The position numbers and the translations under genes are program-made. The notes beneath the pieces were generated by a model. That model saw only the letters and a list, made by a program, of their open reading frames with translations. It ran no database searches and was not told the origin of the DNA. From Thalia democratica (lineage: Eukaryota), in the NCBI GenBank assembly GCA_965202585.1, contig OZ241831.1, positions 10,292,001-10,356,000 on the forward strand: a stretch of DNA of 64,000 bases, written 5' to 3'. Within the stretch, counting starts at the first letter, position 1, and each line of letters opens with the position of its first letter. Below, piece after piece: positions 9,601 through 53,121 of this stretch.

Positions 9601-12600
9601 TAGATAGTTATTAGTTATAAAAAGTATTAGTTTTTTAAGTATTATAGGTAATTATGCTTGAGTAAAAAGAAAACACATGAAATAACCTGTTTAAAAATTC
9701 AATTGTGGTGAAAAAAAATAAGTATGTAGGACAAAGTTATACTAAACTAAATTGAATTTTGCCTGTACAATAATTACTATTTACCAAAAGTCTAAGGATA
9801 CATCAGGGTGTTTTTAAACTCTTGAATTTTTTTCATAAAGTCTCAGGATCTTTTTGAGATTTCTTTAGATCTCACGCCAGATTTTTCTAGATTTATTCAA
9901 AGGTTTTGTTAAACTATTTTGTTATTATTTGTTGATTTTAAAAGCTTTAATTTTTTTTTTTTGGAAAAAAAGCAAGATGACTCAAAACAGGTTTTTTACT
10001 AAAAGAGTGGCAACCCTGGTTTAATTAAAAAATAAGTTAAATAAATTAAAAAATAATAAATAATGTAAAATAGATTCCTAGGAAGGAGTTTTCAGCATAC
10101 TAAATAAAAAAATTATGATACTAAGTTTTTTTTTTTTGGTATTATATTAAAACAATACTTTTTTTTTCAGCCAAAATTCACAGTAGACCAAATCCGTGAG
10201 ATCATGGACAAGAAGCGTAACATTCGTAATATGTCTGTTATTGCTCACGTCGATCATGGAAAGTCAACTCTCACTGACTCACTTGTCAGCAAAGCTGGTA
10301 TCATTGCTGGTGCCAAGGCTGGTGAAGCCCGTTTCACTGACACCAGAAAGGATGAACAAGAACGTGCTATCACCATCAAATCCACGTAAGTTGAAAAATT
10401 CTGATATGTCATTTATTAATTTTAACTCTGAATTAGTTATACAATATGATAAACTAATCAATTTCTTAAAATCACAAGACAAATACTGTCATTACTAGAT
10501 TCTTGGTTATTTTACAATGGTTTTAAGGCTCTTAGCAGAAATACTTATCTAGATTTCTTAGACTTGACTTCATATTCAATCTTGAAACAATTTATCAATT
10601 TTTCACTTATTGTAGTGTAAGAATATGAATCTAATGATCATTTTGTAAACCTTTTTTACCTTTAAACTATTTCAAAGTTATTGGTTTCAACATTAATTGA
10701 AATTCAAATATTTTTTTCTGTAGAACAATTATTAGTAACATGGTAGAAGAACATTAAAAATTATATAGATGTCATTTAAAAATAGATATATTTTATCTCT
10801 AGCAATTTTCTTTAGTAGAGTATAAAGCTAATAAGAGATAATATTTTACAAATTTATATAGTAACCAAGTAATCATAAAACAATCAGAAGATTATTAAAT
10901 AACAAAAGCAATTTGTAACAATTTAAATCATTTAAATTTACTTCAATTATAATTAATATACATTAAAAACATACATCAATATAATGACAATAACACTTAA
11001 ATATTTTACGAAAATAAAGAAAAGTTTCCTTGAAAATATACAAATAGCTTCTAGTTTAATCAAATCCAAAACATTTGTGTTTAAAAGTTTTAAATATGTG
11101 TGTCATGTATATCTTATTGTATAACTTATAATTACTGGTCACTTAAGTTAAAGTATTTTATCTCATTAAATAAGTTAAAAGCTTTAATTTAATTATTGAA
11201 AAAATACTTATAATATAAATACTTTAAGATACTTATAACTGAATCTTAAAAGGAGAGGAAGGTATTGTTAGTTACCAGTACTACTTGTAAATAGCTTTTA
11301 GTGAACAAGCAAATATAAGCATCTTAATTTGTTTAATTACAAATTATCAATTTAGTTTTGTAATATCTACACAACTTTAAAATTAGATTACTTTAAAACT
11401 ATTTATTAAATTCTACAGTGCCATCACCATGTACTATGAGCTTTCTGATGCTGATATGGAATGGATCAAACAAGAAAAAGACGGAAATGGTTTCTTGATC
11501 AACTTAATTGACTCCCCCGGGCACGTTGATTTCTCTTCTGAGGTAACTGCTGCCCTCCGTGTCACTGATGGTGCTCTTGTCGTCGTTGATTGTGTCTCAG
11601 GTAAGTATGTTTGGCTTAAAATAAGTTGAACTACAGAACAACAATAGATTTTGAAAAATTAATTAAAAGAAAATTAATTAAAGTGTTTCTAAAACTACAG
11701 ACAAATGTGACTTATAATTAAAATCAATTCTGTTTATTTTTATGATAACCTTCAATAAGAATATAAAATTATAAAAACATTCGTACTTAAAGGCAAATCT
11801 TTCAAATAAAATGAGATATTGATAATTTTACTTGCTAGTTCTGCTTTAGAAATTATTTTGATTATAAACAACTACACGCACCCTGCATCTATAAATTTAA
11901 CAAAAAAACTCTCATGATTTTTCAAATATATTGTTGAGACAAAAAACTTAACAGGTGTCTGTGTCCAGACCGAAACTGTATTGCGTCAAGCTATCTCTGA
12001 AAGGATCAAGCCAATTGTTTTCATGAACAAAATGGACCGTGCACTTTTGGAGTTGCAACTTGATGAGGAGTCTTTGTACAAGACTTTCGAAAGGATCGTT
12101 GAAAACATCAATGTCATCATTGCCACTTACAATGATGAAGATGGCCCAATGGGTAATATTCAGGTAAATAATCTTTCAAAAATCAGCAAATGGAAATACT
12201 TTAAAACTAATACTATAATTGACAGATGAAAATAAAAAATTCTGATACTGTAGTTTGCCAGTTCTGCTGCAGAAAACTTTTTGGTGATAAACAATTACAT
12301 AAATTCTGATTAAACTAACTATAAAATAAGAAGTATAACTTCAGAAATTACTTTTCTAAATTTTAACATTCTACAGGTCAGCCCAGAGAATGGTACAGTT
12401 GGTTTCGGATCTGGTCTTCACGGATGGGCCTTCTCTTTGAAACAGTTTGCTACAATGTATGCCAGCAAATTTGGTATTGATGTGCAGAAGTTGATGAAGA
12501 AGCTTTGGGGTGAGAATTGTTTTAACCCTAAGACCAAAAAATGGAGCAAGTCCATGAAGGACGGCTACATCAGAGGTTTCTGTATGTTTGTCCTCACTCC

Positions 12601-52400: not shown

Positions 52401-53121
52401 CTGTAATTTGCCAGTTCTGCTTCAGAATTTATTTTGGTGATAAACAATTACATGCATCCTGATTTTTAAATAAAATTCTATTTCCTTTTGAAATACACAT
52501 TAAATTTTATTAAATTTTGTTCTTTTTACCAGGGAGTCTTGTGCGATGAGAACATGAGAGGTTGCCGTTTCGATCTCTATGATGTGGCACTTCACGCTGA
52601 TGCTATCCACAGAGGAGGCGGTCAAATTATCCCAACCGCTCGTCGTGTCCTTTACGCTTGTCAGCTTACTGCTAAGCCAAAACTCCTTGAACCTGTTTTC
52701 TTGGTTGACATTCAGTGTCCAGAGAACGCTGTTGGAGGAATCTACGGAGTGCTTAACAAAAGGAGAGGTCACGTCTTTGAAGAGTTCCAACAACCAGGAA
52801 CTCCTCTCTTCCAGGTCAGGGCTTACTTGCCTGTCAACGAGTCTTTCGGTTGGTTTTGGTTGCTAATATAAAGTTTTTCAATTTGATTAAATTTTATTAA
52901 GTTGCTCAAATTACTTATTTCAAACAGGATTCACTTCTAAACTCCGTGCCGGCACTGGAGGTCAAGCTTTCCCTCAGTGCGTCTTCGATCATTGGCAAGA
53001 ACTCCCAGGAGATATGGAAGATCCCAATAGCAAGCCCATGCAGATTGTAACTGAGACCAGAAAGAGGAAGGGACTTAAGCCCGAAGTTCCCCCATTGGAC
53101 AAATTCTATGACAAATTGTAG
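43410..53121 (+). CDS. EEF2: Eukaryotic elongation factor 2, copy 3, intact, 842 aa, 14 exons
   Basis: Exons 43410-43412, 46373-46587, 47661-47842, 48162-48370, 48596-48829, 49170-49283, 49720-49811, 50117-50359, 50833-50933, 51176-51441, 51672-51851, 52125-52304, 52533-52848, 52928-53121. Same exon lengths as copy 1; all GT-AG. Confidence 0.97.
43876..44245. mobile_element. MITE with 6-bp TSD, copy 3 intron 1
   Basis: CAGTGTTGCCA...TAGCAACCCTG flanked by TATAAT/TATAAT. Confidence 0.8.
44394..45553. mobile_element. Cluster of three adjacent MITE-like elements (44394-44784, 44819-45131, 45161-45553)
   Basis: Degenerate CAGGGTTGCC/GGCAACCCTG termini. First and third share the family's internal AAACCTGG sequence; TSDs not recognisable. 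Confidence 0.6.
46855..47478. mobile_element. Nested MITE pair in copy 3 intron 2 (inner ~47068-47362)
   Basis: Outer CATGGTTGCCA...GGCAACCCTA is interrupted by a second AGGGTTG...GTGGCAACCCTG; the outer consensus resumes after 47362. Confidence 0.7.
47521..47587 (+). pseudogene. Relic of family A snoRNA, copy 3 intron 2
   Basis: CCAGTACTTCTTATGA...TTTTAGTGAACAAGCAAATACATGCATCTTAA; ends 73 nt before the acceptor, the same spacing as intact copies. Confidence 0.45.
48021..48090 (+). ncRNA. Family A snoRNA, copy 3 intron 3, intact
   Basis: ATGATGA, GCCAGTTCTGCTT-CAGA, GTGATAA, CTGA; 71 nt from the acceptor. Confidence 0.88.
48459..48529 (+). ncRNA. Family A snoRNA, copy 3 intron 4, intact
   Basis: All boxes and guide canonical; 66 nt from the acceptor. 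Confidence 0.88.
49599..49659 (+). ncRNA. Family B snoRNA, copy 3 intron 6
   Basis: ATGATGT, CGGATATGGGT-CTGA, D CTGA; 60 nt from the acceptor. Confidence 0.8.
49970..50040 (+). ncRNA. Family A snoRNA, copy 3 intron 7, intact
   Basis: All boxes and guide canonical; 76 nt from the acceptor. Confidence 0.88.
50685..50757 (+). ncRNA. Family C (SNORD30-like) snoRNA, copy 3 intron 8, full guide
   Basis: TGTGCT/AGCACA stem, C ATGATGA, AATCTCGTTAATC complementary to 28S GAUUAACGAGAUU, inferred D' CTTA, C'-like ATGATTG, D CTGA; 75 nt from the acceptor. Confidence 0.8.
51032..51102 (+). ncRNA. Family A snoRNA, copy 3 intron 9, intact
   Basis: All boxes and guide canonical; 73 nt from the acceptor. 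Confidence 0.88.
51541..51601 (+). ncRNA. Family B snoRNA, copy 3 intron 10, intact
   Basis: Identical to 15272-15332. Confidence 0.85.
52392..52462 (+). ncRNA. Family A snoRNA, copy 3 intron 12, weakened C box
   Basis: C box AAGATGA (U2 to A); guide, D', C' and D canonical. Confidence 0.65.

Follow-up and report, generated by a model that had tools for sequence, protein, structure and literature searches.

Three genes for elongation factor 2 (eEF2) lie in the 64,000 nucleotides of Thalia democratica DNA analysed here (assembly GCA_965202585.1, contig OZ241831.1, positions 10,292,001 to 10,356,000 of the forward strand; hereafter the window), and their introns carry again and again one unit of 70-71 nt, counted from box C to box D, which we call Z. 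In our opinion Z is, in all likelihood, an intron-encoded box C/D small nucleolar RNA (snoRNA) of the snR61/U38/SNORD38 family, which would guide the methylation of a predicted target, A1310, in the large-subunit (LSU) rRNA. The array consists of real and well-supported snoRNA genes of a known family, and the mechanism is not new. What is unusual is the copy number and the host; in the literature that we compared, eEF2 is not reported as a host of this guide.

Anatomy and position of the repeated unit

The 13-nt core of the guide, GCCAGTTCTGCTT, has 15 matches in the window with up to two mismatches allowed, where 0.67 are expected and shuffled sequence gave three at most. The matches are spread evenly, five per gene, over the three eEF2 copies that we call A (matches at 11834-16166, plus strand), B (matches at 27861-32269, minus strand) and C (matches at 48039-52422, plus strand). 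We built an exon model of these genes from their GT-AG sites, in which 12 introns (introns 2-13) are modelled, and on this model the 15 units fall into introns 3, 4, 7, 9 and 12 of each copy, all of them in sense orientation. An earlier note, made from the letters of this DNA, had named the same introns, and both the matches and the exon model bear it out. The same note suspected a relic in intron 2. This relic is real in all three copies: its alignment score to the canonical unit is 24-30, while shuffles average about 11.5 and reach a maximum of 18-22. Hence the note's two counts, 18 loci and seven canonical ones, stand as they were. We call a unit canonical if AUGAUGA, the guide, CAGA, UGAUAA and CUGA are all present, and the seven are those of introns 7 and 12 in A, intron 7 in B, and introns 3, 4, 7 and 9 in C (Table 1).

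The layout of Z is that of a box C/D snoRNA with one guide. Box C (AUGAUGA) is followed by an 11-nt spacer, the guide UUGCCAGUUCUGCUU, a D' box CAGA, a second 11-nt spacer, a C' box UGAUAA, 15 further nucleotides and box D (CUGA). Boxes C and D are present together in seven units of the window and in 14 genome-wide, and the decayed copies are without one or both of them. CAGA and UGAUAA stand at the places expected for D' and C' in all canonical copies, and the Rfam alignment sets CAGA on the CUGA of the family; the guide upstream of D' is identical in every canonical copy. The flanks are A-rich on the 5' side and U-rich on the 3' side in most units, with GAG/CUC in the units of intron 3, and the terminal stems are weak.

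The SNORD38-type identity was proposed before any database was searched, and the Rfam search now agrees with it. Six units of the window reach the gathering score of RF00476 (snR61/Z1/Z11; clan CL00051, which includes SNORD38), at 45.3-51.6 bits against a threshold of 45. In a fourth eEF2 gene, copy D, which lies upstream of the window, three of the five Z units score 46-47.8 bits and the other two, with 44.4 and 43.1 bits, fall below the threshold.

The position within the introns is equally regular. There is one unit per intron. Although the introns measure 212-473 nt, the 3' splice site follows 58-76 nt after the end of every unit, be it of Z or of two further C/D families in the same genes (X and Y, described below). 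In human, box C/D snoRNAs favour a place about 50 nt upstream of the branch point (PMC5519232), and the distance seen here fits this preference. Moreover, contigs from public RNA runs, when aligned to copy C, have introns 3, 4, 7, 8, 9, 10, 12 and 13 spliced out exactly at the predicted GT..AG sites. Z is therefore intron-encoded by orientation, by location in spliced introns, by number per intron and by position.

The predicted target in 28S rRNA

The ribosomal DNA (rDNA) was located by a search for conserved motifs, and six rDNA units were read. The unit measures about 15.1 kb, is present in about 270 copies and encodes an LSU rRNA of 3403 nt. One such repeat (C26:9001-24200) holds 18S, 5.8S and a compact 28S gene, and its spacer holds two 5S genes, one U2 and one U5, all on the same strand.

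The segment that faces the guide, LSU 1306-1320, reads AAGCAGGACUGGCGA. The earlier note had expected the 28S rRNA to contain AAGCAGAACUGGC and held that its absence would speak against the whole idea. Taken literally, it is absent: all six rDNA units read have AAGCAGGACUGGC instead, and none of the 27 exact matches to AAGCAGAACUGGC in the genome (both strands) lies in rDNA. What remains of that claim is a duplex of 15 contiguous base pairs between the guide and LSU 1306-1320, 13 of them Watson-Crick and two G.U. Counting five nucleotides upstream from D', one arrives in this duplex opposite A1310 (the A in GGUAAGCA*G), and this part of the note's prediction, made by the D'+5 rule, stands. As judged from the two sequences, Z has a guide of at least 10 nt with its predicted target at position 5. 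The note also put forward the equivalence to human Am1858; going by the sequence context around the yeast and the human positions, A1310 would be the same nucleotide as yeast Am1133 and human Am1858. The guides AtU38 (Am1140), yeast snR61 (Am1131 in the numbering of that paper) and human U38 (Am1858) have been equated as one ancient family (PMC3511168).

The difference between the expected and the actual 28S sequence deserves some explanation. Compared with the Rfam model of eukaryotic LSU rRNA, the hairpin that contains the target (LSU 1228-1388) shows a compensated change, in which a consensus u-a pair has become C-G. Since the G of the 28S is the compensated half of a hairpin pair, it is a real substitution in the rRNA and not an error of the assembly. 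The reading of A1310 as the predicted target survives the absence of the exact 13-mer because the U of the guide pairs with this G as a wobble. No intact Z copy has changed its guide to match the altered 28S; the only copy with the matching C is that of intron 9 in A, which has lost its boxes.

We also looked for a guide that had followed the rRNA, in the form of the C variant CCAGTCCTGCT. Its hits in the genome are 11 in exons for signal peptides (contig C1) and one in coding sequence (contig C2), and we rejected it as a candidate. This guide-like word led us to a family of secreted proteins: at C1:99.59-100.14 Mb at least 11 tandemly scattered genes start with the signal peptide MMKLILPVLLISLMTSQS.

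Several points weigh against our interpretation of Z as a working guide for A1310, and they should be stated together. One of the G.U pairs lies two positions 3' of the target nucleotide and could weaken guiding. The D' box (CAGA) and the C' box (UGAUAA) are both off consensus. The predicted folding energy of Z is no better than that of shuffles (z of -0.2 to -0.7), which is usual for C/D snoRNAs and adds no support. The 75-nt unit is in no public RNA run, these runs being contig assemblies (two of them marked as oligo-dT or plain cDNA) that would rarely hold a 70-nt RNA. Two further objections, which concern the choice among host genes and the 3' half of the unit, are taken up below with the explanations to which they belong.

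The eEF2 gene family, its history and alternative explanations

Six eEF2 loci lie on the contig of the window: A, B and C in the window, the intact gene D, the pseudogene E and the divergent paralogue F (Table 1). For the window genes the reading frames indicated eEF2, and the Pfam and PDB searches made afterwards agree; the top PDB matches of copy C are metazoan eEF2. Exon 1, presumably the 5' untranslated region with the ATG, was not located in these copies. In copy B, exon 5 (31494-31726, minus strand) has lost 1 nt relative to A, C and D and the frame is shifted, and GT-AG is kept in 12 of the 12 modelled introns of this copy. In pseudogene E the surviving exons are 72-77% identical to D, and what is left of them is still bordered by AG/GT sites. 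Both of its Z units are 98.7% identical to the intron-12 unit of D and retain intron-specific signatures. In paralogue F, GNMHHGKS stands in the P-loop in place of AHVDHGKS, and the introns are far longer (about 2.9 kb for intron 10).

The 14 canonical Z units of the 801-Mb assembly all lie within eEF2 loci; elsewhere the guide is matched only by coding sequence or by chance. A looser guide pattern, CCAGTYCTGCTNCWGA, gave two extra hits (C5 and C1040), both coding and without box C, and these were discarded. Copy D has five intact Z units and C four or five, while A and pseudogene E have two each and B has one.

Z multiplied within one gene before the gene itself multiplied. The layout of the introns is common to all loci, and signatures that distinguish the units of one intron, such as AUAUACAUUGG in intron 9, are shared between several loci. 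Both observations place the spread from intron to intron before the gene duplications. The earlier note had proposed this order of events, and the order holds; the "triplication" of which it spoke is too small, as there are six loci. Comparison of the copies thus gives a history in which Z was copied within an ancestral eEF2 gene by cis-duplication into introns 2, 3, 4, 7, 9 and 12, and the gene with its snoRNA cargo was then duplicated to six loci on one contig. The scenario that we favour continues as follows. An intact Z would be released from the spliced eEF2 intron, trimmed to the box C/D core and assembled with the C/D proteins Snu13, Nop56, Nop58 and fibrillarin. Its single guide upstream of D' CAGA would pair with 28S 1306-1320 and direct the 2'-O-methylation of A1310. 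Among the redundant copies, a subset would be held intact by selection while others decay.

Selection on the units is the point at which the first alternative departs from this scenario. It is conceivable, though we consider it unlikely, that only copy D is a working host, that A, B and C are silent or weak duplicates, and that their units resemble one another because the copies were duplicated or converted recently, and not through selection on function. Four public RNA runs contain contigs of spliced eEF2 mRNA, joined where the model predicts GT..AG introns. At 35 of the 40 sites that are diagnostic between D and C they match D and not the window copies, so that D is the copy shown to be expressed; this is one of the two objections postponed above. 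Copies A and B have lost most of their Z, X and Y units, B being frameshifted in addition. The identities of the flanks also form a mosaic (in intron 12, 91% between A and D, 93% between B and C, 71% between D and C; in intron 3, 94% between A and B), which suggests gene conversion between the copies.

On the other side, the frame of C is intact, and as a number of pieces of the RNA contigs agree with C to 99% or more, C may be transcribed. The distribution of identity also speaks against this alternative. Between D and C, identity is 96.3% in the Z units (338/351), as against 70.2% in the flanking intron (642/914; Fisher p = 9e-29). For the intron-7 unit it is 98.6-100% across D, A, B and C, while the flanks of D against the others reach only 56-60%, and units without boxes drift toward the identity level of their flanks. 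Conversion tracts would need to coincide with units of about 71 nt to produce such a pattern, and the intron signatures are preserved. Hence we prefer selection on intact units in several copies.

The second alternative concerns what Z does. Its main or an additional role could be other than the methylation of A1310: the region upstream of box D might act on another RNA, or Z might serve as a chaperone, and the G.U-containing D' duplex would then be vestigial. This we regard as improbable, although the second postponed objection belongs here. The non-guide 3' half of Z (ACAAUUACAUGCAUC) is strongly conserved, and no target for it was found in the rDNA unit; among paralogues whose separation predates the gene family it is, as AAACAAUUACAUGCAUC, no less conserved than the guide. 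It also remains true that the 28S target changed and that the guide of no intact copy followed. On the contrary, a search for a second target of the conserved region upstream of box D gave no match of 10 bp or more in LSU, SSU and 5.8S rRNA, the whole 15.2-kb rDNA unit including its spacers, 5S, U2 and U5. The same region can also pair internally, in a 7-bp helix with UGUAAUU, which lies downstream of box C, and the D' guide is invariant in all canonical copies.

A third idea takes Z for a small element that is mobile or retroposed (snoRT-like), or for one that serves the splicing of the intron, without a working guide. It could appeal to the many near-identical copies, to a similarity between introns that stops about 5-10 nt past the boxes and to the A-rich 5' flanks, but it is hardly credible given that no copy lies outside the eEF2 loci in 801 Mb, that all copies are sense and fixed at 58-76 nt from the 3' splice site, that conservation picks out precisely boxes C, D', C' and D together with the rRNA-complementary guide, and that Rfam puts the units in a known snoRNA family.

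The state of the host genes is of interest in itself. Pseudogene E and the frameshifted B may be hosts that are moving from coding to non-coding. We would extend this tentatively to the whole family: the loci could form a series from coding to non-coding host (D, coding and with its full cargo; C and A, coding but with fewer units; B, frameshifted with its splice sites retained; E, with its coding sequence destroyed and its 5' part gone, while selection retains four snoRNAs and the splice sites beside them) in which surplus copies were retained chiefly as snoRNA carriers, and the high copy number of Z might offset a duplex weakened by the change from U-A to C-G. This is speculation, and we would not be surprised to see it fail.

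Further snoRNA families, known relatives and other features

The earlier note missed two further C/D families in introns 5, 6, 8 and 10. Family X, found in introns 6 and 10, combines a terminal stem with AUGAUGU as box C and CUGA as both D' and D; the X guide, CGGAUAUGGGU, pairs with LSU 2057-2067, with A2061 as the predicted target. Family Y, found in introns 5 and 8, shows the boxes AUGAUGA and CUGA and the stem GUGC/GCAC. The Y guide, GUAAUCUCGUUAAUC, pairs with LSU 2554-2566 (GAUUAACGAGAUU), and the D' register decides whether A2558 or A2559 is the predicted target. X was not matched to any named human or yeast guide, and Y has in Rfam a weak match only, to snoU30 (32.6 bits, below threshold). 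Copy D has an intact C/D snoRNA in nine of its 12 modelled introns (2-13), none of them a SNORD37 homologue. Hence eEF2 appears to be a general snoRNA host in this species, and nine snoRNAs could come from a single copy D transcript. The note's idea that a single transcript releases four or five copies of the Z guide, coupling transcription of the elongation factor to guide dosage, holds at most for D, whose sequence the mRNA contigs match, rather than for the copies in the window.

Table 1. eEF2 loci and intronic snoRNA units (positions in the window unless stated otherwise; i, intron)
Feature	Position	Strand	State
eEF2 copy A, coding exons 2-14	10171..17088	+	intact 842-aa frame; 13 GT-AG introns; Pfam GTP_EFTU on exon 2; cargo Z i7, i12; X i10
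Z relic, A intron 2	11258..11330	+	score 26 vs shuffle maximum 18
Z, A intron 3	11820..11885	+	decayed: without box C, guide GCUAGUUCUGCUU, D' UAGA, without box D
Z, A intron 4	12234..12311	+	decayed: without box C; guide end CUG
X, A intron 6	13329..13405	+	guide intact; D' and D both CUAA
Z, A intron 7	13756..13834	+	canonical; 70/70 identical to copy D unit
Y, A intron 8	14464..14537	+	decayed: guide mutated, internal deletion
Z, A intron 9	14797..14874	+	decayed: without boxes C, D', D; guide GCCAGUCCUGCUU
X, A intron 10	15264..15344	+	intact; 97.5% identical to D
Z, A intron 12	16132..16209	+	canonical; RF00476 47.1 bits; identical to copy D unit
eEF2 copy B, exons 2-14	27161..33907	-	frame shifted by 1-nt deletion in exon 5; cargo Z i7; X i10
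Z, B intron 12	27818..27896	-	box C AAGAUGA; without C'
X, B intron 10	28657..28736	-	intact
Z, B intron 9	29168..29228	-	5' part including box C lost; rest intact
Y, B intron 8	29508..29593	-	guide mutated; boxes kept
Z, B intron 7	30226..30304	-	canonical; RF00476 45.3 bits
X, B intron 6	30648..30724	-	D' CUAA, D CUGA
Z, B intron 4	31791..31867	-	decayed: without boxes C, D
Z, B intron 3	32213..32283	-	decayed
Z relic, B intron 2	32754..32828	-	score 30 vs shuffle maximum 22
eEF2 copy C, exons 2-14	46373..53121	+	intact 842-aa frame; Pfam EFG_IV and EFG_C on exon 13; cargo Z i3, i4, i7, i9, i12 (variant box C); X i6, i10; Y i8
Z relic, C intron 2	47532..47590	+	3' splice site 70 nt beyond end; alignment score above shuffle maximum
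Z, C intron 3	48020..48090	+	canonical; RF00476 46.5 bits; terminal flanks GAG/CUC, not A/U
Z, C intron 4	48456..48532	+	canonical; RF00476 51.6 bits; private variant CAUACUGA at 3' end
Y relic, C intron 5	49097..49137	+	3' part only
X, C intron 6	49591..49661	+	intact
Z, C intron 7	49965..50043	+	canonical; RF00476 45.3 bits
Y, C intron 8	50678..50763	+	intact; GUGC/GCAC terminal stem
Z, C intron 9	51029..51105	+	canonical; RF00476 49.2 bits
X, C intron 10	51534..51613	+	intact
Z, C intron 12	52387..52465	+	variant box C AAGAUGAG; rest intact
eEF2 copy D	190 kb upstream of window		intact gene; exon 2 opens VNFTVDQIR (A, C: PKFTVDQIR); Z 5/5 canonical and intron-2 relic
eEF2 paralogue F	16.88 Mb (C7:16874001-16894000)		protein about 80% identical; Z relics in introns 2, 3, 4, 7, 9; one intact snoRNA, X in intron 10
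eEF2 pseudogene E	36.05 Mb (C7:36050001-36066000)	-	with stops; lacks exons 10-12 and the 5' part; units X, Z, Y, Z intact

The closest known relatives of Z are snR61, U38 (SNORD38A/B) and AtU38 (RF00476, RF00212 and RF00135 in CL00051). Like Z they are box C/D snoRNAs of similar length with one guide, CCAGUUCUGCU, upstream of D', and their target, the A of GGUAAGCA*G in the large-subunit rRNA, is the one predicted for Z. Z is set apart from them by its D' CAGA and C' UGAUAA, by the compensated U-A to C-G change in its target hairpin, which brings a G.U pair into the guide duplex, by its 14 canonical copies where human and chicken have two of U38, and by its host, eEF2 instead of the RPS8 of human and chicken. 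Yeast snR61 is encoded in a polycistronic cluster.

The vertebrate hosts that the earlier note named are correct. U38a/b reside in RPS8 (in chicken in introns 4 and 5), and U37, whose target is human 28S A3697, resides in EEF2 (chicken intron 6), in human and chicken alike (PMC3766210, PMC2653536). Vertebrate EEF2 thus also hosts an intronic box C/D snoRNA, SNORD37 (U37), and a guide of this type (the complement of GGUCUCCAAGGUGAA) is absent from all six eEF2 loci, with no RF00440 match at E<=5. The predicted site of X, A2061, presumably lies about 20 nt upstream of the equivalent of the U37 site as we estimate it from human numbering. As to the "host switch" of the earlier note, setting its direction would take outgroups.

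Copying of a snoRNA into other introns of one host is a named process, cis-duplication (PMC2653536). Near-identical paralogues across the introns of a translation-related host, as seen with Z, are formed in chicken by U18a/b/c (RPL4 introns 2, 5 and 6) and U15a/b (RPS3 introns 4-6). The eEF2 genes carry more copies each (six for Z, and ten slots for the three families), multiplied by a host family of six loci. Non-coding hosts of the GAS5/SNHG type resemble E, and B to a lesser degree, in keeping intact snoRNAs and GT/AG sites while coding capacity is lost. E differs from them in that its non-coding state, known from genomic sequence, can be seen to descend from a protein-coding host that was duplicated.

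We also inspected metagenome contigs with SNORD38-like sequences, 80 out of 120 in a haphazard sample, and none of them had eEF2 exons beside the snoRNA. One of the contigs, Ga0081606_1008239, which stems from another eukaryote and is a multi-copy array of the same guide, has four SNORD38-like C/D units in 4.3 kb with good terminal stems and no eEF2 or obvious coding exons adjoining.

Associations between snoRNAs and hosts are unstable over long times, as formulated in the "constrained drift" model (PMC3511168). The guide described here is ancient; human and chicken have it in RPS8, this genome in eEF2 only, and it adds a clear case of such drift among broadly expressed genes. The family further offers a compact system in which to study the need for snoRNA dosage, with 24 Z slots in four colinear genes, and relics at two further loci, where intact units stand beside decayed ones. 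The loci may moreover illustrate the passage of a duplicated host of snoRNAs from coding to non-coding.

Outside the eEF2 genes, an open reading frame of 218 aa without a Pfam match lies at 494-1150 of the window, and the first 2000 nt (1-2000) have a GC content of 45%, against about 23% in the adjoining sequence.

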